Part shown: piece after piece, positions 5,218-24,004 of the stretch
Numbering within the stretch: the first letter of the stretch is position 1
Layout of the letters: every line of letters starts with the position of its first letter
NCBI GenBank assembly: GCA_037447605.1
Contig: CM074808.1
Location: 3,410,001-3,474,000 of the forward strand
Length of the DNA stretch: 64,000 nt
Direction of reading: 5' to 3'
Source of the DNA: Zygnema circumcarinatum SAG 698-1b
Lineage: Eukaryota > Plantae > Zygnematophyceae
Notes under the pieces: generated by a model
Database searches by the model: none
The model's input: the letters and a program-made list of their open reading frames with translations, nothing else
Told to the model about the DNA's origin: nothing
Program-made: the position numbers and the translations under genes

Positions 5218-5895
5218 GGCGCCGCCTTTTTGAGTGGTTTTCAGAATCAGGGCCTCAGAGGAGTGAGGGATTCAGGAGGTGAGGATTTAGAGAGAGATGG
5301 TCAGTTTACTGGGCACGATGCAGCAAGGAGAAAAAGGAGACGAAAAATAAAAGAAAAAAAAAAGACGGGATGTGAGCAAAAATAGTGCTAGATTTGGCCA
5401 CTTTCTGTAGCAGAAATACAGCTACTTTGCGAAGATAAAAAATATTTGAAAATTTGAAGTGATATTTGTGCTGTCAGCGTGCATCACTTCCTTTCAGGGA
5501 AGCGAGCTTTCAGTGCGAAGTAGCTGCGCCCAAGAGAGGTACCGAAATGGTGATACTTACAGCCGAAATTCCGACCTGGAAATTTGCGTTCATGGACGGA
5601 AACCAAGTGTCTCCATGCGACCTGCGTGAAACGGTGGCTCTCGGTCGATCCATGCACAACAGTCCCGTTCACATCTAACGCTTCCAACATCACATAGAAT
5701 TGTGTCAAACTACTTCCACAACGGCCGAACATAGAAACGCAAGGCAAAAAAGTACGCCTCGCCCCCCTCAATCCCGAATCGGTATCCCGCTAAAGCTAAA
5801 AAACAGGCTTGACCAGCTCGTCCCCATTGACCATAATACTCATTTTAGACATATCCTCGCCACGACGGACTTGACCGAATCCTGGTGACCCTCGT

Positions 5896-6066
5896 GGCCA
5901 ATTCCCCGCCAATCCGCCAGCGCCACGTGGCAGGGTCCCGCGATCCCCCCCGGCCCGCCCCCGCCCCGCCATTCGCCCCCCGATCGCGAAAAATCAATCG
6001 CGGCGCGCAGGGCTATCCGCTCCCTCTCCCACTTCCTCTCCCTCTCCCGCCGGCGGCTATATATCC
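5896..6066 (+). promoter_or_regulatory. LHC copy A1 promoter: CCAAT motifs, palindromic G-box GCCACGTGGC (5922-5931), TATA-like CTATATA near 6058
   Basis: Motifs seen directly upstream of the ATG at 6153; G-boxes are established light-responsive elements in LHC promoters. Confidence 0.6.
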
Positions 6067-6152
6067 CTCCGCCCTCGCCTGGCTCAGCAGCCCCGCCACC
6101 TCTCCCTCTCCCTCTCCCTTCCTCGCTCTCTCTACTCCCTCATCCAGCAGCC

Positions 6153-6917
6153 ATGGCCGCCCTCGTCGCAGCACCCGTCGTGGCCGGCTCCGCGTTCGCG
6201 GGCCGCACCGCGGAGTTGGGCCAGCAGGTGGGCAGCTCCAAGGCCCGCGTGAACATGACGAGCTGGTACGGCCCCGACCGCCCGCTCTTCCTGGGCCCGC
6301 TCTCCGCCGACCCCCCCTCGTACCTCAAGGGCGAGTACCCCGGCGACTACGGCTGGGACACCGCCGGCCTCTCCGCGGACCCCGAGAGCTTCGCCAAGAA
6401 CCGCGAGCTGGAGGTCATCCACGCGCGCTGGGCCATGCTGGGAGCCCTCGGCTGCCTCACCCCCGAGCTGCTCTCCAACAACGGCGTGAAGTTCGGCGAG
6501 GCCGTGTGGTTCAAGGCCGGCGCGCAGATCTTCGCTGACGGCGGCCTGGACTACCTCGGCAACCCCAGCCTCATCCACGCGCAGAGCATCCTCGCCATCC
6601 TCGGAACGCAGGTGCTGCTCATGGGCGCCGTGGAGGCCTACCGCGTGGGAGGGGGCCCCCTGGGAGAGGTCGAGGATCCCCTGTACCCCGGCGGCAGCTT
6701 CGACCCCCTGGGTCTGGCCGACGACCCCGAGACCTTCGCCGAGTTGAAGGTGAAGGAGATCAAGAACGGGCGCCTCGCCATGTTCTCCATGTTCGGCTTC
6801 TTCGTGCAGGCCATCGTCACCGGAAAGTCTCCCCTCCAGAACTTGTCCGACCACCTTGCTGACCCCGCCGTCAACAACGCATGGGCCTATGCCACCACCT
6901 TCACTCCCGGCCAGTAA
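6153..6917 (+). CDS. LHCB: Major LHCII chlorophyll a/b-binding protein, intronless subtype A (copy A1), 254 aa, short mature N-terminus
   Basis: [61 protein letters not shown] motifs; N-terminal transit peptide. Confidence 0.98.
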
Positions 6918-9125
6918 ATATGTGGGGTAGTGATAGGTAAAGTTTCCCATGCGGGATTTAGGTTCAGGACTGAGATCGCCTTCAAATGTTCATATCTAGG
7001 CTCGATTGGAGGTGGCTCGCTTGCTAGTCGCAAGAAGGTAAATTGTATCTAGATACGTTAGGAGTACATGCGATGTTCCAATGGATTGTAGTGCGTTTGA
7101 GGACTTGCAATCAACTATGGCTTCGCTCAAAGTTGTGCCGCGTGATTTCTGTATGGAATTGCCTCGTGCTGCTTCATGCCTGCATTATGATCGATGACAT
7201 CAATTATGCAACTTTATCTCATTGTCTCCCGTGGCAAGGACATTGGGGCCCCGAAACTGTCAATGCTTCTTATTTCATCGCTGCTCTCATGTCACCTGCA
7301 TGGTGCTTGTTCTACTGCTGTCTTCAATGCTCTTTTCTGTTGATATAGATAGCTCATCAAGGTTTGCGGTACTCAGTTCATGCGAGCGATATTACATAGT
7401 GCGACAAGGGGCTATCATAGTGCGACGCGAGGCGACATCGTTGTTTTACCTATGGATAGTTGGCGAGCAATGGCGTAATCTTTCTCAATCGGAGCATTCT
7501 CTGTATTGTTAAGATTTCAATGTCAGGTTATGTCCCTTGAGCTTCTCCTTTCTCGTCGAAGATAGAAAACCGGATCTGGGCTGAAAGAAGCCCATTCCGA
7601 TGGGAATTGAGCGTGGACTGAATGCGCGAGAAAATGCAGACTCAGTACTCCGCATAATGCAGATTTTTACTTTTGTGTGACGGCTTTGGCATTTGATGAC
7701 GAGAGAATAAATGGGTGTATATTCTAGGAATATTTAAGCGTCAAAAACGGAAAAGTATCAAATATGCATCAAGAGTCGAGGACACTTCAAAAAGGCCTTA
7801 TACTAATGCGGCACGCGAAGGAAGTTGATTCTTCCTAATGTATTAGTGATATGTCGATCGACCGCATTTAGAGCTTCATACTGAAGGAGTGTATGTGGCT
7901 TCAAGAATGGCGCACGGTTGCAGGTGCTGAAGGGGGGAGGTCGAACTGGTTTTCTGTTTCTAGTCAGTGTGCAGCGGAAGCAGTTTGACTGTTATTGAGA
8001 AGTGCAGGAGTGGCTAAGCTATCATAATTTTCAAGAATAAGAGGTGGACTCTTGCGGCGACAAGCAAAAAGGGTTTATTGCGCGCCTTTCTTTCGAAGTC
8101 GATTAAAAAAAAATAACCGCAAGTCTGATGTTACTGATTGACGTGACATGTCGTGTTCACATCTAGTCATTAGTGGGGAAACCCTTGCTAAGGAAAGCAC
8201 TTATGACGATTTTAGTCGATAGTAACGAATTGAAGTGAGCATACGCCCTTCCAAAATGTTGTTTGGGCTTCTTCCAGTCAGTAAGAATCATAAGATATTG
8301 TATTATAAATACGTAGTGTACTATGAGGCGTTAACCTTTTCACGCTTCGTCATTCACCCTTCAAAGGAAACATTTTCAAACGAGAAAAAAGTGAAAAGAG
8401 AAAATGTCATGTGTCAACTCTCCCTCCCCCTCCACTCACGTCTCTCTATCCTTGGCTTTCCCTCTACCTCTCCCCCTCCCTCTCCCTCTCCCTCTCCCCT
8501 TCTCCTTCCGCCCGGCCTCCACCGTCCTCCCACCCGCCACTTCTCTTTGTGGCGTAAGGGACTGAGTTGTGGGAGAGAGTCCCGCAAAACACGAGGGCAC
8601 GTAGGACTCTTCGTGCGTTCCGAGAAATTCCCTTGGTCCGAACTTGTACCCGCGACATCGATCCAGGTATTACATCTAAAAAGTGTATCAACCGTCGCAG
8701 TTAGTGACCGCCACTGGTTCTGAGCAAATCGCAGTTTTGCACTTCCCAACGTTAAGCTCGCCAAAGTTACAGCAACAGATGGCAGACATGAATAAGAAAG
8801 GAAGCGCAGTGTCATACGCTGAAGAACATAAGAGCAAAGATATTTCCACAACTACCGTCCCCAATACTTTCCGTAATCAACGCGACTTTCGAAAACGCTG
8901 AAAAGAGAAAGGCTCCCTGACAATTCATTTAATCCACCGCTTAAAGCAGTTGGACAAAGGGGACAACCGCCATTATTCAAACGTGACAGATTTTACGCGT
9001 CTAATTTTGTACGTCCTCTAGCAACAATAGTACATATCAACATAGAACTACTCAATGCACATTCCAGGCCTGAAATGAACAATGCCAAGCGCTGCAGCAA
9101 CTTGAATTACGTTAATTCCAGCTCT

Positions 9126-9890
9126 CTACTGGCCGGGGGTGAAGGTGGTGGCGTATGCCCATGCATTGTTGACAGCGGGGTCAGCAAGGTGGTCGGACAA
9201 GTTCTGGAGGGGAGACTTTCCGGTGACGATGGCCTGCACGAAGAAGCCGAACATGGAGAACATGGCGAGGCGCCCGTTCTTGATCTCCTTCACCTTCAAC
9301 TCGGCGAAGGTCTCGGGGTCGTCGGCCAGACCCAGGGGGTCGAAGCTGCCGCCGGGGTACAGGGGATCCTCGACCTCTCCCAGGGGGCCCCCTCCCACGC
9401 GGTAGGCCTCCACGGCGCCCATGAGCAGCACCTGCGTTCCGAGGATGGCGAGGATGCTCTGCGCGTGGATGAGGCTGGGGTTGCCGAGGTAGTCCAGGCC
9501 GCCGTCAGCGAAGATCTGCGCGCCGGCCTTGAACCACACGGCCTCGCCGAACTTCACGCCGTTGTTGGAGAGCAGCTCGGGGGTGAGGCAGCCGAGGGCT
9601 CCCAGCATGGCCCAGCGCGCGTGGATGACCTCCAGCTCGCGGTTCTTGGCGAAGCTCTCGGGGTCCGCGGAGAGGCCGGCGGTGTCCCAGCCGTAGTCGC
9701 CGGGGTACTCGCCCTTGAGGTACGAGGGGGGGTCGGCGGAGAGCGGGCCCAGGAAGAGCGGGCGGTCGGGGCCGTACCAGCTCGTCATGTTCACGCGGGC
9801 CTTGGAGCTGCCCACCTGCTGGCCCAACTCCGCGGTGCGGCCCGCGAACGCGGAGCCGGCCACGACGGGTGCTGCGACGAGGGCGGCCAT
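9126..9890 (-). CDS. LHCB: Major LHCII protein, intronless subtype A (copy A2); protein identical to A1 and convergent with it
   Basis: ORF-track translation is identical to 6153..6917. Confidence 0.98.
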
Positions 9891-10136
9891 GGCTGCTGGA
9901 TGAGGGAGTAGAGAGAGCGAGGAAGGGAGAGGAGTCTGCTACTTCCCTGCAGGAGAATGGGAGAAGGAGACGGAGACTGCAAGGGACATGAATCTGCGTT
10001 GGGCGCCGGCGTGCTTTATGGGAGGGCGGGGGCGGGGGCGGAAATCGGAACCGGTAGTGCGCTCGGCGGCGGGTCTTGCCTGCGCGCGCGGACGAATGGC
10101 GAGGCGTGACCCGAGGGCGGGAGATCTTGGCGCGTG

Positions 10137-10573
10137 CCACGTGGCGGGTGCTAGCTCGCCATTCGCGGAGGGGGGATTCTCTAGCGCCGCGCGATATTGA
10201 CACGTGGGAGGGCGCGGGGAGGGGGGCGCGGAAGGAGTCCTCTGCAAGTTTGCGGGGTACTGTCAAATGAGGTCCTTGGAGGTCCGCTGGCTCTGTGTGG
10301 TGGCCACGTGGACAGTTGCGGATCTGCTCGTTTCCACCGTGGCGCTCCTGACCAAGGCAGGCCTTAGGTCGGATTGAGTAGCGCGCACATCTTCTTGTCA
10401 TTTGAGTGGATATGGATTGGATCACTGTGATGGTACTGGTTCGGATTTGTTGCCGATATCTGGTTTGAGGCGCACGAGATTTCGCAGACTTGGCTCGCGA
10501 GGCCACAAGATTGGTGACGCTTGCCACGTGGCACGTGCGTGATTGGATGTTCGCGTCCCACGTGATATCACGT
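10137..10573 (-). promoter_or_regulatory. G-box/ACGT cluster upstream of LHC copy A2 (about 7 CACGTG cores)
   Basis: CACGTG near 10138, 10201, 10304, 10525, 10532, 10559 and 10569, plus ATTGG (CCAAT) motifs. Confidence 0.6.
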
Positions 10574-11473
10574 GACATCGGTTCCAAAATAAAAAATTCA
10601 TAAGTTACATGTGCCAGTTTCACGGGGAGTGGAACTGCTCAGTTCGGATCTACGCATTCCCATGGTCGAACTCGCAGGAGGGATCCGCCGTGCGACTGGG
10701 CCTTGTTGAACTGCGGACGAGCACCATGGAGCAGCGTTGGCTCCCAGAGAGGCACTTTCACCGGCCTTCGTAACCTCAAAGCTTTTTTCGTTCAGAATTC
10801 CAAAATAACTCAGTGTTGACGTCCGAGTTGGAGGTGCAAGGAAAAGTCGTATGATTTTCTTCAAGTAGAGCCTGCAGGGACTTTTGGTTCACAGTTTGGG
10901 GAGCTCGTTTTCCTGCACCTGCCTCATCTTGTGAGACTCCAGGGCTTATTTGCGGACTCGATTTCAATGATGTGTCGAAGTTTCCGCTGCGAGCCGGCCT
11001 GCAGATCTGGAGACCTGCCCCGCTGCAGTTTCCCCATGGCCATTGTATTGAAATGACTTGCCCAACCGCGCGTGACATTTCAGAAACTAAATAAGTCTCC
11101 CCGGAATTGGTCCGGCGCAGGCTCGTCGCCAGCCCGGGCCAGGATTGGAGCTGGGACCAGGCAGGCTCGGCAGGAACCGGACTGTCAGAAAGAGCTTCAA
11201 GCCTGGTGCTCTGTACTGCGTTTCTTTGTTCCGGATATGGATGCTTGGATCGGCAGACATGGTGTTGCACCTGCTGCACGCATGTCCATGCATATCAGAT
11301 AGTCACATGCCGTATGTTGAAGGATGTGGCATTGCTTTCACGATGGCGTATGGTGTTCAGTCCAATGCAATCTGCACGTTGTTACGCAGACCTCTATCGT
11401 CCTATATGCATGTTAGTTTACTTTAACAGAATGTTTATTGCAACAAGTGCGTCTCGCAAAGTGGCAGGAAAAA

Positions 11474-12127
11474 GGAAAATGATACTGCCCCCCCCCGTTT
11501 TGGGTTATCCCGCCCCATTTTCTTCTGAAATCCCGCCCTCCCATTTTGGCTATTCCCCCCCCCCCCGCCCCCCACCCATTTTGGATATGTTGGGAGGAGA
11601 TAACCCCTCCCCTTCCCTCCCCTTCCCCGCCCTCCCCTGCCGTTTTCACCCCTCCCCTCCTCTCCCCTCCCCTCCCCTCCCCTCTCCTCCCCTCCCCTCC
11701 CCTCCCTCCTCTCCCCTTCCCTCCGCTGCCCTCCCCTCCCGTCCTCTCTCGTCCTCTCCCCTCGCCTCCCCTCCCCTCTACCCTTCTCTCCTCTGCTCTC
11801 TCCGCTGCTCTCTTTCCCCTCAGTTTTCTCTCCTCTACTCTTTCTCCTATAGTCTCTCTCTCCTCTACTCTCTCTCCTTTGCTATCTCTCTCTCTCTCTC
11901 TCCTCTGCTCTCTCTCCTCTACTCTGCTCTCTCTCTGCGAATGCGTCTTTAATGTCTTTACGGACACTGCGCTAATGTGTGAAAAGGAGAAAACAGGGGG
12001 GATGAATATCCAAAATGGGGAAGGGCGGGATACCCAAAACAGAAGGCGGTAAAGCCGAAATGGGAGGGCGGGATTTCAAAAAAAATGGGGCGGAGAACCT
12101 TAAAAGGAGGGCTAAGTATCATTTTCC
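11474..12127. mobile_element. Non-autonomous MITE (Mutator-like or hAT-like), 654 bp, about 120-bp imperfect TIRs, 8-bp TSD AGGAAAAA
   Basis: Termini GGAAAATGATACT / AGTATCATTTTCC are perfect inverted repeats. Inner TIR motifs TGAAATCCCGCCCTCCCATT and CCCATTTTGGATAT occur at both ends. AGGAAAAA lies at 11466-11473 and 12128-12135. The interior is CCCCT/CT microsatellite. Confidence 0.85.
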
Positions 12128-14225: not shown

Positions 14226-15001
14226 GGCTGCTACTTGCAGAACCTTGAGGAAACTCTTGCAAGAGTTTGGAAGCTGAGAGGAAATTTGGAAGAGAGGAAA
14301 TTGCTGCTGGAAGAAGGCGCCTGGCCGCGTCTTTATAGGGAGGGTGGAAACTTCGCGGAAGCTGAAGTGTGACAGTAGTGACGGCCGACCGTTGGCGGGT
14401 GTGAGAGGTTTCAGGCGAGGTTCGGGCAGTAAACTGGCAGGCAAAAACTACCTTTTGAAAGTTTTGGTTTTTTTAGATCTGGCATTCTGACCGACTTTCG
14501 AACAGACCGTACGGTATTCCTTGGTTCTACAACCCCGCCCTATTGGCTGATGAGTTTCGATGTCTGCCCGTTTAAACGGGCAGAACTTCAAAACGTTTTC
14601 ACATATGCCGTCAATTATTTTGGGGTAGCGACTCTTAGCCAAACCGGCCGGCCAGGGAGCTCCCCCGCTCACCACCCGACGCGTGTCCTCCGGATCAGCC
14701 CTTCCCGGCCTCCCATTGGGCCGTCCGGATGCCGCCCAGTCAGCACGGCACGTGGCACAGCCTTGCGGCAACGCAAACTCTACGGCCAATCAGCGTGCGC
14801 AATTTCGGATTTCCAAAATCTTGGACGGACTTCGCCTCACCCACAGTCCGAGCAGCCCTCGACCGACCAATTTTTCCTTTCCAGCCGGGCAGCCTTATAA
14901 AGTGCTGGGGGGCCCTCATCAGCAAATCTATCCTTTGCAAACTTCCTTTCCAGCTTCCAAACTCCTGCAAGAGCTTCCTAAAGGTTCTGCAAGCAGCAGC
15001 C
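14226..15001. promoter_or_regulatory. Shared bidirectional intergenic region of LHC B1/B2 with paralogous 5' UTRs
   Basis: Genes are head-to-head; TATA-like TTTATA near 14332 and CTTATAAA near 14895; GGCACGTGGC near 14747; both UTRs end CAAGAG(T/C)TTCCT...GGTTCTGCAAG(T/C)AGCAGCCATG. Confidence 0.65.
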
Positions 15002-16073
15002 ATGGCCGCCCTCGTCGCCGCCCCCTCAATGACCGCCGCCTCCACCTTCGTGGGACAGACCGCCGAGCTCGCCCGCCAGGTCGGCAGCAGCGAGGCGCGC
15101 GTCACCATGCGCCGCACCAAGGTCCAGGCCCCCGAGTCCATCTGGTACGGCCCTGACCGCCCCCAGTTCCTGGGCCCCTTCTCCGCCGCGACCCCCTCCT
15201 ACCTCACCGGCGAGTACCCCGGAGACTACGGCTGGGACACCGCCGGCCTCTCCGCTGACCCCGAGAGCTTCGCCAAGAACCGCGAGCTTGAGGTGCGTTG
15301 TGGTCCTGGAACTTGTGGCTTAGTCGTGGTCTTCCTAGCATTGACGTAGGGCTGTCTCCATTTTTTATGAAGATTGGCTGGCGCCGACCTGCAGCCTTTG
15401 ATTCTTTTTTTCCGTTTTTTTTTCCCTGTCAATGAACATGAAGCTCTTCTGTAATACGCATTTTTTGGATCATAACGGTCTAGGGCGTAGATACTAGTCC
15501 TGAATGCAAAGCTTTGCACACTCTGTATTATGGCGGTTAAACTTACTACTCGGCGCTTTTTGTACGCAGGTCATCCACGCTCGCTGGGCCATGTTGGGAG
15601 CCCTCGGCTGCCTGTTCCCCGAGCTCCTTGCCAACAGCGGTGTGAAGTTCGGCGAGGCCGTGTGGTTCAAGGCCGGCGCGCAGATCTTCGCTGACGGCGG
15701 CCTGGACTACCTCGGCAACCCCAGCCTCATCCACGCGCAGAGCATCCTCGCCATCCTCGGAACGCAGGTGCTGCTCATGGGCGCCATTGAGGGCTACCGT
15801 GTCTCCGGCGGTCCCCTGGGAGAGGTGACCGACCCCCTGTACCCCGGCGGCAGCTTCGACCCCCTGGGTCTTGCTGACGACCCCGAGACCTTCGCCGAGT
15901 TGAAGGTGAAGGAGATCAAGAACGGGCGCCTCGCCATGTTCTCCATGTTCGGCTTCTTCGTGCAGGCCATCGTCACCGGAAAGTCTCCCCTCCAGAACTT
16001 GTCCGACCACCTTGCTGACCCCGCCGTCAACAACGCCTGGGCATACGCCACCGCCTTCACCCCTGGCCAGTAA
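15002..16073 (+). CDS. LHCB: Major LHCII protein subtype B (copy B2), 264 aa, exons 15002-15292 and 15570-16073
   Basis: 277-bp GT-AG intron at RELE/VIH; LHC motifs present. Confidence 0.97.
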
Positions 16074-19594: not shown

Positions 19595-22500
19595 GGTTAT
19601 GGGCCCACTCATGCCTCAAATGCGCTTGAAAAATTTGATGGGACAAAGCGGCCACATTTGGAAGTTCGAGTGCCAGCAGCTTTTGAGAAGAATCTGTGAG
19701 ATACGTAGATTCGCGGTCTAGAAGACGTCGCTTTACCCTTCCTCCGCCCCGGCCAGCGGCGCCTTGGCTGCGCTGGCCCAGCGAAGAGAGATCGCCCGAT
19801 GGACAAAAGCAGCGACAGAAGGCGTTTCTCGCACATCACACTTTCGGCGATGTGCCGATCTCATGGACCGTCCGTGGCGCCACCAATACGGCGGCGGACT
19901 CTTACGACCAATGTCGCGTCTGAACCTGGAAGTGGTCTCACAAACTCCGTTTGCGGCGTGCGCCGCTAAGCTGGCGAGAATCCTCACCGAAACCATCGCG
20001 CGACGCGCCTCTGCGACGCGTCAAATCCTTTGCTAGAGCGGTTCACAGCATTGATTCGTAGTTAAGCTGATGATGAGATCATCTGTAATCTTTTATTTTG
20101 CCCGACTCTTTCGATCCTTCATCTCGTCGTGATCTTTTGCCTCGATCCTCACTAACCGTCGGTGATCGACCGACCTTCTTTTGAGCGAGGAGGAAAAAGT
20201 TCCCGCCTCCGGATCACTCCCAGCGCATCGCGCTTTGGATCTGGTCCCGCCAAGTCTCCTGGCGCCCTCTTTGTCGGTGTGCAAGGAAACAGAGACTCAT
20301 GGAGACAAGCTATCCCGCTCACAAAAAGGAAGCGCCCGACTTTGCCGCTTGCCGTCGCGACCACCCTCCGCCCGGTAGCGCGTAAATATCGCTTGGCGGC
20401 GCCTCCGATTTAGCCTGGTCCAGTCCCAGCCCATTTATGCGACTACGTAGCCACCACTCCCTCCGTTCCTAGCTCCTTGGTCCCGCGCCCTTGCACTTAC
20501 GTACACCCTGCACCCGGCTTCCCCGGCCGGCCAACCTCCCACCCGGGTGGCGTCATGGTGCTCGGGTTGATCCGCGCCTTTTGGCCTTGGACCCTTTTAG
20601 GTATGACCCTTCTCTCCCTGACTCCACTTGGCTTATTGACTCGGGTGCCTCCCATCATCTAACTTTTCGTCGTGACTGGTTCTCTCGGCTTTCTCCCCTC
20701 CCTCTCCCCATGACCATTTTCTTAGGGGATAACCGCTCCTTGACTGCCACGCATGTCGGCCAGGTTTCCACTCTAATTGACGGCCAGCGCTTCATCATCG
20801 ATGACGTCTACCTGGTGGATGGCCTCGCGAAGAATCTGTTTTCAGTAGCCTCCATCCTCCTCCTAGGCATTTCAGCCCTTTTTAGGCCAGATGGGGTCAC
20901 TTTCTTCACCCCAGAGGCTGTAGTGGGGCACGGCCGCAAAACCGGCCGCTTGTTTTCCCTTACCTCTTTTGCAGCCTCCCTTGGGCACGCCCATGCTCAC
21001 ACCACTGACCCCCCCCTTACCTTTGCTCGGTGGCACCTCCGCTTTGGCCACCTTGCTGAAAGTAGCCTCAGAACTCTCGGACAGGGCTTAGTGTTAGGTT
21101 TAGACTCTTTCTCTACCGAAAAGTTAGACTTTTGTTCAGGCTGTATTCAAGGAAAAATGACCAGATTGCCTTTTCCCTCAAGCTCCACCCTTGTCTCTGA
21201 GCCTCTGGCACTCATTCATTCTGATGTCTGTGGCCCTATGCGTGATGTTAGCCTCGGCGGCGCATCATACTTTGTCACTTTCATTGACCAAGCGACTCAT
21301 TTTTCCCACGTTTTTCCCATCGCTCACAAGTCTGACGTTTTCTCCCGCTTCCAAGAGTTCAAAGCCCGTGCAGAGACCCTTCTCGGTCGCCGCATCAAGA
21401 CCCTTCGCACTGATAACGGCGGCGAGTTTATGTCCCGCCTTCTCGAATACCTTACTTCCGCGGCATCACCCATGGAGACTACCGGCTCCCTACACCCCGA
21501 CAAAATAGATGGCGGCGGTTTAACCGCACCATTCTGCGACATGGCTGGCTCTATGCTTCATTTGCCACCGACCTCACTGGCGCGCCGAAGGAAGCCATCT
21601 CCACGGCCACTTGCAGCCCGGAACCTTTCCCCCACCTGCTTGCCTCACAACGCCTTCGAGGGCTGGCGGGCGGCAAACTCCGTCTCCCACCCTCCGTTAT
21701 CTTTGGCTGCGGGCTGGTACAAAGATCTGCGTCAGGTCGTCACGGCAAATGGGGCATGGGCGACTGGCGGCATTTTCTTGGCTGCGAAAAACTGCGTCCA
21801 GGCCTATGCGTGTCTGGTGTTGTCGCGACAAATCAGGGTGTACTTTCAGCCAGCGGCGTAAGCATTTAATGAGGCTCCCTCGTCCAGCGCGGCTTCATTA
21901 AGCCACCGCCCGCGACCGATACACCCGCCGACTTCCTCCCCGCCGCAGCCCAATCTTGCGCCATACGATTCCCCCCCCTACGTGACCGTTGGATATCATT
22001 CCCCCCCCCCCCCCGCGACCGCTCCCCCATTGGCGCCAACATTCCTTTTGTCCCGCCCCCGGTCGCCGCTCCCCCTTCCCCTCCCTTCGGTGCCCCTGCG
22101 TCCCCCTCCCGTCGACCCCCCTCCCCCCGCCCCCCCCCCTCCCCCTCGTCCTCTCTGCTCGACCCTCCCTCTTCTGTTCAGAGGGAGCTTTCCACCTCAC
22201 CCGAGCGGACGGACCCTCCCCTCCGCCTACGGACCCCCTCCCTTTTTCCCTCGCGCCTTCTCCCGGCTACCCGACTCCCCCTCCCCGCTTCACCCGTGGC
22301 CTCCCCGCCAGCACCCGCCCCTCCGGCCTCTCCCCTCACAGTTTCCCCGGCCCACGCCCCCGCCACGGCACTCGCGATCGGCGACCCACGTGGAAAATTA
22401 TCGACACTGCCGCCCATGCCCTCCTTTCCTCCGCCATGGCCTTCATCGCCTCCTCGTCTGCCCCCCCTACTTTTGCTGCCGCCCTTCGCACCCCTGACGC

Positions 22501-24004
22501 AGCCCTCTGGAAAGCTGCCGCTGATGCTGAATTCCTCTCCCTTCAGAAAAACAACACGTGGGACCTTGTCCCCCTCCCACCCGGTCGTCGCGCCATCGGC
22601 TCTAAATGGGTATTTAAAATCAAACAAAAATCCGACGGCTCGGTTGACCGCTATAAAGCCCGTTTTGTAGCCAAGGGGTTCTCTCAGCTTGAAGGCATCG
22701 ACTTCACCGAAACTTATGCCCCGGTGGCCAAATTCACCTCCATTCGCGTCCTCCTTGCTCTCTCCGCCACCCACGATTGGGAAATTCACCCGGATGGATG
22801 TCGAAACCGCATTCCTCTCTGAGGGACCTTCAGAAACGATCTTTTATCGCCAACCCGACCGGGTATGTCACTCGGCACGAACACATAATACGCGCCTCAG
22901 CAAATCCATCTCTGACCTCCGGCGGCAAAGCACCAGCGTCTGGAACCGCACTTTGGATGCTGTCCTTCTTGCCAGCGGCTTCACTCGCATCGACGCCGAT
23001 TTCAGCATCTATCTTCGTGGCCACGGTCAGACCCTCACCATCCTTGCCGTTTACGTTGATGACCTCATTATCTGTGGTCCCTCCCTTTCCCCCATTTCGG
23101 ATGTCAAACAGCTCCTTCGCAGCCATTTTGACATGACGGACCTCGGCGAACTGCAATGGTGTCTCGGGATTCACGTCATTCGAGATCGGGCTGCTCGGAC
23201 CCTTCACCTCAGTCAGGAAAAGTATGTTTCCGATCTCCTTGACCGTTTTGGGATGGCCGCTTGCAACCCCATCTCCACCCCCCTGGACGCCCACATTCAC
23301 CTTACCTCCCTTGTGGCTGGCTCCCCCGACCCCACGGAGCATGCCACTTACCGATCCATCGTGGGATCCCTTATGTATGCAATGTTGTGTACCCGGCCGA
23401 CCTAGGCGCGGCCGTCGGGCAGCTCAGCTAATACATTCACCGCCTCTTCTACTCCTTATTGTACATGGCGTGTCGCCACCGTTACCTTGAGGGGCACCAG
23501 GCCACAGGCCTTACCTTTCTCCTCTGGCTCCCCACCCTGGGTGGCTATTGTATTCATTTGGTGATGACCCGACGCACAAGGCGTTGATTCTTACAGCTGT
23601 TGTTTTCTACAGGCGTGGCCCTTATTTCATGGTCCTCTCGGAAGCAGCCTACAGTGGCCACATCCTCCACTGAAGCAGAGTATATGGCCGCCTCCACTGC
23701 TGCCAAAGAGGCTGTTTGGCTCCGATCCCTCCTCTCCAACCTCACCTTCCCTCCCCCTCACGCTACCACCGTCTTCACGGACTCTCAAGGTGCCCTTGCC
23801 CTCATGCAAAACCCCGTGCACCATCAACGTACCAAACACATCGACATTCAGTTCCACTTCACTCGGGACAAGATTGAAGACGGCACCCTTACCTTCCTCT
23901 ACTGTCCTACCGGCAAGCAGACCGCCGATTTTCTTACCAAGGCCTTACATCGGCCGGCTTTTGAGCTTCACCGCTCTTCTGCCGGACTCCACACTTTCGA
24001 ATGA
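19571..24004 (+). pseudogene. Copia gag-pol, unit 1, broken by many frameshifts as assembled
   Basis: The ATG of [12 protein letters not shown] lies inside the LTR; pol fragments are in ORFs 20491-21861, 21989-22822, 22689-23405 and 23600-24004 (ends AGLHTFE*). Confidence 0.88.

Follow-up and report, generated by a model that had tools for sequence, protein, structure and literature searches.

What becomes of a major light-harvesting complex II (LHCII) protein when its gene no longer encodes most of the stromal tail? The question is raised by a 64,000-nucleotide stretch of the genome of the streptophyte alga Zygnema circumcarinatum SAG 698-1b (contig CM074808.1 of assembly GCA_037447605.1, forward strand, positions 3,410,001 to 3,474,000; this whole stretch is called the window here, and coordinates are counted from its first nucleotide). 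The window holds five major-LHCII genes, A1, A2, B1, B2, and B3. The tail of LHCII is the handle for state transitions, through the docking of its phosphorylated Arg-Arg-Thr motif (RRT, or RRpT when phosphorylated) at photosystem I (PSI), and has also been linked to grana stacking. The B genes encode this motif; the A genes, whose common product is called A, do not. Sequence comparisons lead us to think it probable that A is a tail-less, non-mobile LHCII that resides with photosystem II (PSII) and was derived within this lineage from an RRT-bearing LHCBM protein.

A1 (6153-6917, plus strand) is an intronless coding sequence (CDS) of the LHCBM type with a tail-less N-terminus, recognized by its open reading frame (ORF), by Pfam and PDB matches, and by contigs of public runs that match it with 0 mismatches; A2 (9126-9890, minus strand), recognized by its ORF, is a second intronless copy. 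The two genes are convergent (tail to tail), and their uninterrupted 254-codon ORFs specify identical 254-residue products. The comparators are three one-intron LHCII paralogs with an RRTKVQ tail: B1 (14225-13935 joined to 13229-12726, minus strand); B2 (15002-15292 joined to 15570-16073, plus strand), which is arranged head to head with B1; and B3 (43411-43121 joined to 42844-42341, minus strand). Each encodes 264 residues and is interrupted once, by a GT-AG intron that separates the codons for ...NRELE from those for VIHARW...; the spliced proteins were used for the alignment, for the estimates of non-synonymous and synonymous divergence (dN/dS), and for the trees. The A genes sit 3-8 kb from B1 and B2, in the same LHCII cluster, and outside the tail the mature part of A is 95% identical to B.

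A first-pass annotation of this DNA had claimed that A lacks nine stromal residues, including RRT, and retains the motif WYGPDR, and both statements hold. In the alignment, the tail before WYGPDR comprises two residues (Thr-Ser) in A and 11 in B; the nine tail residues that A lacks include RRT, and WYGPDR itself is intact. (A passage of PMC5505961 that cites Hobe 1995 describes WYGPDR as the trimerization motif.) At the codon level, the A-specific junction in A1 (6252-6269, plus strand) reads AAC ATG ACG AGC TGG TAC (N-M-T-S-W-Y), and the identical sequence is present in A2 (9774-9791, minus strand), within the inverted repeat that is described below; B has nine extra codons here, including CGC CGC ACC for RRT. 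When ATG ACG AGC TGG of A is set against ATG CGC CGC ACC AAG GTC CAG GCC (T/C)CC GAG TCC ATC TGG of B, the difference is not explicable by one clean deletion. At the mature N-terminus, the basic-basic-Thr sequence is present in B (M-RRTK) and absent in A (M-TS-W).

The A tail is the shortest among ~120 streptophyte LHCII relatives with a readable tail. The other Lhcb1/2/LHCBM tails in this survey have at least 8 residues; one of these, the 8-residue AKGASSSG of Mesotaenium endlicherianum P0072, likewise lacks RRT. Tails of the Lhcb3 type have 4 residues (GNEL, SADY, or GADY). A protein database look-up returned no record of the exact A sequence and no A-type ortholog, the closest relative in the database being ~83% identical over the full length, so that little can be said about close relatives. 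A metagenome scan for M-x-x-WYG(P/A)DR found nothing A-like among at least 120 matching stretches; among the matches listed (at least 120), one encodes a light-harvesting protein, the chlorophyte-like L029 (...KSKVMAEWYGPDR).

Apart from its tail, is A still a major LHCII? The protein matches Pfam PF00504 (Chloroa_b-bind) with an E value of 6.5e-51, aligns without an indel to the Lhcb1 structures of spinach (1RWT) and pea (2BHW), and scores 408-436 bits against PDB chains of Lhcb1, Lhcb2, and LHCBM. With residues numbered as in the spinach LHCII structure, the trimerization residues W16, Y17, and R21, the phosphatidylglycerol residues Y44 and K182, and the side-chain chlorophyll ligands that were checked (E65, H68, Q131, E139, E180, N183, Q197, and H212, together with R70 and R185) are all conserved in A and likewise in B. 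A maximum-likelihood tree of mature cores unites A and B1-B3 in a clade (support 97/93) that lies inside the Lhcb1/Lhcb2/LHCBM clade (95/86), and a broader tree places the LHCII genes of the window beside the LHCII of Mesotaenium endlicherianum. Taken together, these comparisons identify A as a genuine LHCII of the Lhcb1/2/LHCBM type, in agreement with its earlier description as a major LHCII isoform.

The Mesotaenium sequences also give a weak hint that the A/B split is older than the tree implies and has been masked by concerted evolution: RVNM and RVGGGP are common to A and P0072, as RVTM and RVSGGP are to B and P0062, although only 2 sites favor such an early split and 21 favor species-specific clades. 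Within Mesotaenium, the RRT-less P0072 (RVNM-AKGASSSG-WYG) coexists with the basic-tailed P0062 (RVTM-RSKASS...).

A very short tail is a property of Lhcb3 as well, and A might on this account be the Lhcb3 (or Lhcb9) ortholog of the alga. An approximately unbiased (AU) test did not reject a tree in which a branch sets A and Lhcb3 apart from the rest (p 0.31). We attribute this weak result to the unresolved LHCBM backbone of the tree, which would let the Lhcb3 stem attach beside the clade formed by the window genes. Other comparisons separate A from Lhcb3. In the mature-core tree all 18 Lhcb3-type sequences fall into a clade of their own (100/99), with A outside. Nine alignment columns were taken as diagnostic of Lhcb3, each with a state present in at least 80% of Lhcb3-type rows and in at most 10% of Lhcb1/2/LHCBM rows; they include NRALE, loop changes at about mature positions 144-152, and the Tyr insertion of YFDP. 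The Lhcb3 state is present in 0/9 of these columns in A, and equally in 0/9 in B. The mean identity of A is 75.7% to Lhcb3-type proteins versus 85.3% to Lhcb1/2/LHCBM, and against the PDB Lhcb3 chains A scores 362-369 bits, whereas the Lhcb3-like P0127 scores 399-403. As to Lhcb9 (no sequence of which was in the comparison), the 95% identity of A to B and the presence of His at the Chl a603 site speak against it. An assignment of A to Lhcb3 was rejected on these grounds, and orthology to either subfamily is extremely improbable; the diagnostic columns bear out the earlier statement that A is without Lhcb3-type signatures.

The Lhcb3-type clade includes a zygnematophyte genome model, the Mesotaenium endlicherianum protein ME000159S01602 (P0214), and the EukProt algal transcripts P0182 and P0201. 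Besides their 4-residue tail, Lhcb3-type proteins have NRALE and the YFDP insertion; P0214 has NYGPDR in place of WYGPDR. Lhcb3 is said to have arisen with land plants (PMC2323573, PMC12661317). The lineage of the present alga appears to hold Lhcb3-type proteins too, as in Mesotaenium.

Both A genes are expressed. In the vicinity of the two genes, runs X15 and X16 (one study) give coverage only at 5928-7731 and 8388-10191, with a depth of tens of thousands over the gene bodies and zero depth at 5600-5927, 7732-8387, and 10192-10500. Coverage confined to gene bodies is unlike that of DNA, and these runs were therefore taken as RNA. The A-specific junction is crossed with 0 differences by contigs 6249-6367 (X15, depth 13,596) and 6231-6367 (X16, depth 4,316), and contig 6380-6467 spans the position in A that corresponds to the B intron. 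The uninterrupted ORF and these contigs, which cross both the junction and the intron position with 0 mismatches, confirm that A has no intron, as had been claimed.

Each A gene is followed by a unique 3' untranslated region (3'UTR). That of A1 (6918-7663, plus strand) is covered by contigs 6852-6992, 6963-7131, 7062-7618, and 7102-7663, with zero depth from 7732; the main transcript probably ends at ~7075-7130, after which the depth drops, with a minor longer form besides. That of A2 (8513-9125, minus strand) is covered by contigs 8557-9067 and 8513-9040 (X15/X16) and by contig 8861-9195 from X1, a run of another study, and contigs 9038-9188 and 9011-9194 connect it to the A2 CDS. Because the contigs tie each unique 3'UTR to its own CDS with 0 mismatches, both copies are real and both are transcribed, with high apparent depth. 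(Long CT-rich, CTCCCT-like tracts at 6017-6139 in and around the 5'UTR of A1, at 8415-8544 beyond the A2 3'UTR, and further along at 11550-11930 draw numerous contigs that match only in part, and they give rise to false joints when the reads are laid out.)

What, then, might such a protein do? Work on other organisms indicates what the tail contributes. The kinase STN7 recognizes basic/basic/Thr/x/basic, and when Lhcb2 carries the R2E change the PSI-LHCII complex is no longer formed; Lhcb3, which has no such Thr, is not an STN7 substrate (PMC12852261). In maize, Chlamydomonas, Physcomitrium, and Ostreococcus, RRpT docks in a pocket of PsaL/PsaH (PMC12661317). The basic N-terminal loops bridge the stromal gap and mediate stacking, and Lhcb1 is trimmed in low-light pea (PMC7069969). 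In a cybrid, N-terminally truncated Lhcb1/2 accompanies the loss of state transitions (PMC6602992).

Against this background, A would be a functional, well-expressed apoprotein of trimeric LHCII, with its stromal tail cut to Thr-Ser between the predicted cleavage Met and WYGPDR. Given its intact pigment-binding body, A is predicted to fold, to bind chlorophylls, and to enter LHCII trimers. The retention of WYGPDR together with the loss of RRT suggests a subunit that enters trimers but is not canonically phosphorylated and does not anchor the trimer to PSI. It is reasonable to suppose that A is probably not phosphorylatable at the canonical site, and there are good grounds to expect that, with RRT gone, both recognition by STN7/Stt7 and docking to PsaL/PsaH at PSI would be lost. 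A also lacks the basic residues that are thought to aid membrane stacking. Most likely, A would serve as an antenna subunit that is constitutively non-mobile and remains at PSII. Mixed trimers containing A would carry fewer tails that can be phosphorylated and can dock, and the A:B ratio could set the amount of mobile antenna.

Several points weigh against this view. The Thr-Ser pair (T36/S37) persists immediately before WYGPDR, and a Lys and an Arg would be left near the Thr if cleavage of the transit peptide occurred at a more upstream site. In Chlamydomonas, the place of LhcbM1 at PSI can be taken by an LHCBM that has no RRT (PMC12661317), and so a protein that has lost RRT might still associate with PSI in some way. 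Expression was judged from contigs of public runs, whose depth cannot rank A against B, and X15-X18, which are not recorded as RNA, are considered to be RNA from their coverage pattern and may be the assembly project's own.

The persisting Thr-Ser also leads to an alternative in which A is still a kinase substrate, phosphorylated on Thr-Ser or on another stromal residue by Stt7/STN7 or STN8, perhaps after an upstream cut that leaves K-A-R-V-N-M-T-S. Residues K30 and R32 do lie a few positions upstream, the ACG codon of A may descend from the ACC codon for Thr3 of B, and the phosphosites of algal LHCBM proteins are diverse (PMC12661317). However, A is without basic-basic-Thr, and the lone R2E substitution is already enough to cripple Lhcb2 (PMC12852261). 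In addition, the ARVxM cleavage context is common to A and B, and a Thr only two residues from the structured WYGPDR would be poorly placed for the PsaL/PsaH pocket. We regard continued phosphorylation of A as quite unlikely.

Another alternative holds that A is just a redundant LHCII copy in which the tail deletion was effectively neutral, so that the protein adds to antenna dosage and has no regulatory role. In its favor, LHCBM families are species-specific and partly homogenized, with variable tails (PMC2323573, and the trees and alignments here), RRT is missing from Mesotaenium P0072 as well, and Lhcb3 knock-outs are mild (PMC12789144). The two A genes lie in an inverted repeat of 815 nt that is 99% complementary in a repeat search; its left arm (6111-6925) consists of the last 42 nt of the A1 5'UTR, the CDS, and 8 nt beyond, and its right arm is 9118-9932. 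The last 42 nt of the 5'UTR and the first 716 nt of the CDS are identical in A1 and A2, and the differences between them, 6 synonymous and 0 non-synonymous, all fall within the final 50 nt of the CDS. The sequences that flank the two arms are unrelated. Arms of 99% identity between unrelated flanks point to gene conversion along a tract of an older duplicate whose protein has stayed the same, rather than to a very recent duplication.

Two copies that encode the same protein and differ only at synonymous positions, with a very high codon bias (a third-position GC content, GC3, of 0.93), are not what a neutral copy would lead one to expect. The same can be said of the amino-acid change since the A/B split, most of which is on the A branch (0.053, versus ~0 on the B branch), and of the finding that a tail this short occurs in 0 of the ~120 surveyed relatives. 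The divergence of A from B corresponds to a dS of 0.27-0.31 and a dN of ~0.06, giving a dN/dS of ~0.2. A neutral, purely redundant A seems unlikely to us.

How did A come to have no intron? The first-pass annotation had raised the possibility of a retrocopy. On this reading, a B-type mRNA would have given rise to a processed copy that was inserted close to the parental gene and gained new promoters. A is indeed intronless where B has an intron, and the window contains Ty1/copia-type retrotransposon fragments with reverse-transcriptase sequence (20491-23405, plus strand; ORFs for Pol_BBD, gag_pre-integrase, the integrase core, and RVT_2). However, no run of 7 or more A nucleotides and no poly(A) remnant is found within 900 nt after either A stop codon (the search did not extend to target-site duplications), none of the five 3'UTRs resembles another, and the 5'UTRs of A and B share only their final 7 nt. 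The A genes lie inside the LHCII cluster together with B, a few kilobases from B1 and B2. Synonymous divergence between A and B is also uneven along the gene, as gene conversion would give: it is 0.41-0.59 in the part that matches exon 1 and 0.18-0.24 in the exon-2 part, and some stretches have none. This unevenness suggests that gene conversion is ongoing. Finally, intron loss by recombination with cDNA, or deletion in a tandem duplicate, accounts for the same facts. The retrocopy proposal, to which the missing intron is the only pointer in A itself, is thus not supported at this locus and is distinctly improbable, and a tandem duplicate that later lost its intron is no less likely an origin than retroposition. 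In the origin that we propose, which lies within the algal lineage, an RRT-bearing LHCBM gene of the same cluster would have been duplicated, would have lost its intron, and would have undergone in-frame shortening of the tail; A1 and A2 would since then owe their likeness to gene conversion together with purifying selection.

The promoters of A had been described as G-box-rich, a description that fits A2 and does not fit A1. Upstream of A1 there is a TATATA box (6058-6063, plus strand), 95 nt from the start codon, and a single G-box (CACGTG) at 5924-5929 (-229), the same number as for each B gene. A2 has three G-boxes within 600 bp (10138-10310; starting at 10138, 10201, and 10305, or -253, -316, and -420), plus an unusually dense cluster of four in ~50 bp (10525-10574, with starts at 10525-10569) that lies ~640-680 bp upstream of the gene. 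None of the five LHCII genes is without a CACGTG in its upstream 600 bp (B3 has one, and B1 and B2 share one), and the window as a whole contains 34, versus ~16 expected from base composition. The divergent promoter region of B1 and B2 (14226-15001, 776 bp) contains one G-box, at 14749, and, on either side, TATAAAG-like boxes.

A tail-less LHCII is a known design, and by sequence A is an independent and more extreme streptophyte instance of it. The land-plant LHCII subunit Lhcb3, the third of the LHCII proteins and enriched in the M trimer, resembles A in that it forms trimers (a prediction in the case of A), has a very short tail before WYGPDR, and offers STN7 no Thr to phosphorylate (PMC12852261). 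Unlike Lhcb3, which is an old subfamily, A has none of the 9 diagnostic states, has a tail of 2 residues rather than 4, clusters with its RRT-bearing neighbors, and would be a recent, lineage-specific derivative. The RRpT isoforms Lhcb2, LhcbM1, and Lhcbm2 have the same protein body as A, as reflected in its mature identity to the M|RRTK-bearing B proteins, but A is without RRT, without the remaining tail, and without the intron.

Among chlorophytes, the LHCII proteins of trebouxiophytes (Chlorella ohadii, Micractinium, Coccomyxa) are like A in having little or no tail; their precursors of ~241-254 residues read ...RQVTRA(S/A)(V/A/I)E-(F/W)YGPDR. They differ from A in belonging to a separate chlorophyte clade, in having mostly FYGPDR, and in the end of their transit peptide, and their origin is independent. 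C. ohadii is reported to show little or no state transition (PMC12789144). Finally, A may be compared with the trimmed Lhcb1 and Lhcb2 of low-light pea and of a tobacco-henbane cybrid, in which the first basic residues and the Thr are removed and the tail-less LHCII stays in the thylakoids (PMC7069969, PMC6602992); the truncation of A, by comparison, is encoded by the gene and is more complete.

A is thus a real, expressed, lineage-specific tail-less variant of LHCII, and it represents variation at the level of isoforms, not a new kind of protein or a new system. Its presence indicates repeated origins of short-tailed LHCII. It is conceivable, and we put this forward only tentatively, that in a streptophyte alga near the ancestry of land plants a tail-less LHCII encoded as such by its gene evolved independently as a permanently PSII-bound pool that cannot be phosphorylated, or as a means of tuning stacking, with the ratio of A to B expression setting the mobile share of the antenna. 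The adjoining position of RRT-bearing and nearly tail-less isoforms that are otherwise so alike would allow a clean comparison of the role of the tail in a streptophyte alga, and if the proposal is true, the tail-less pool would amount to a natural experiment on the function of the LHCII tail.

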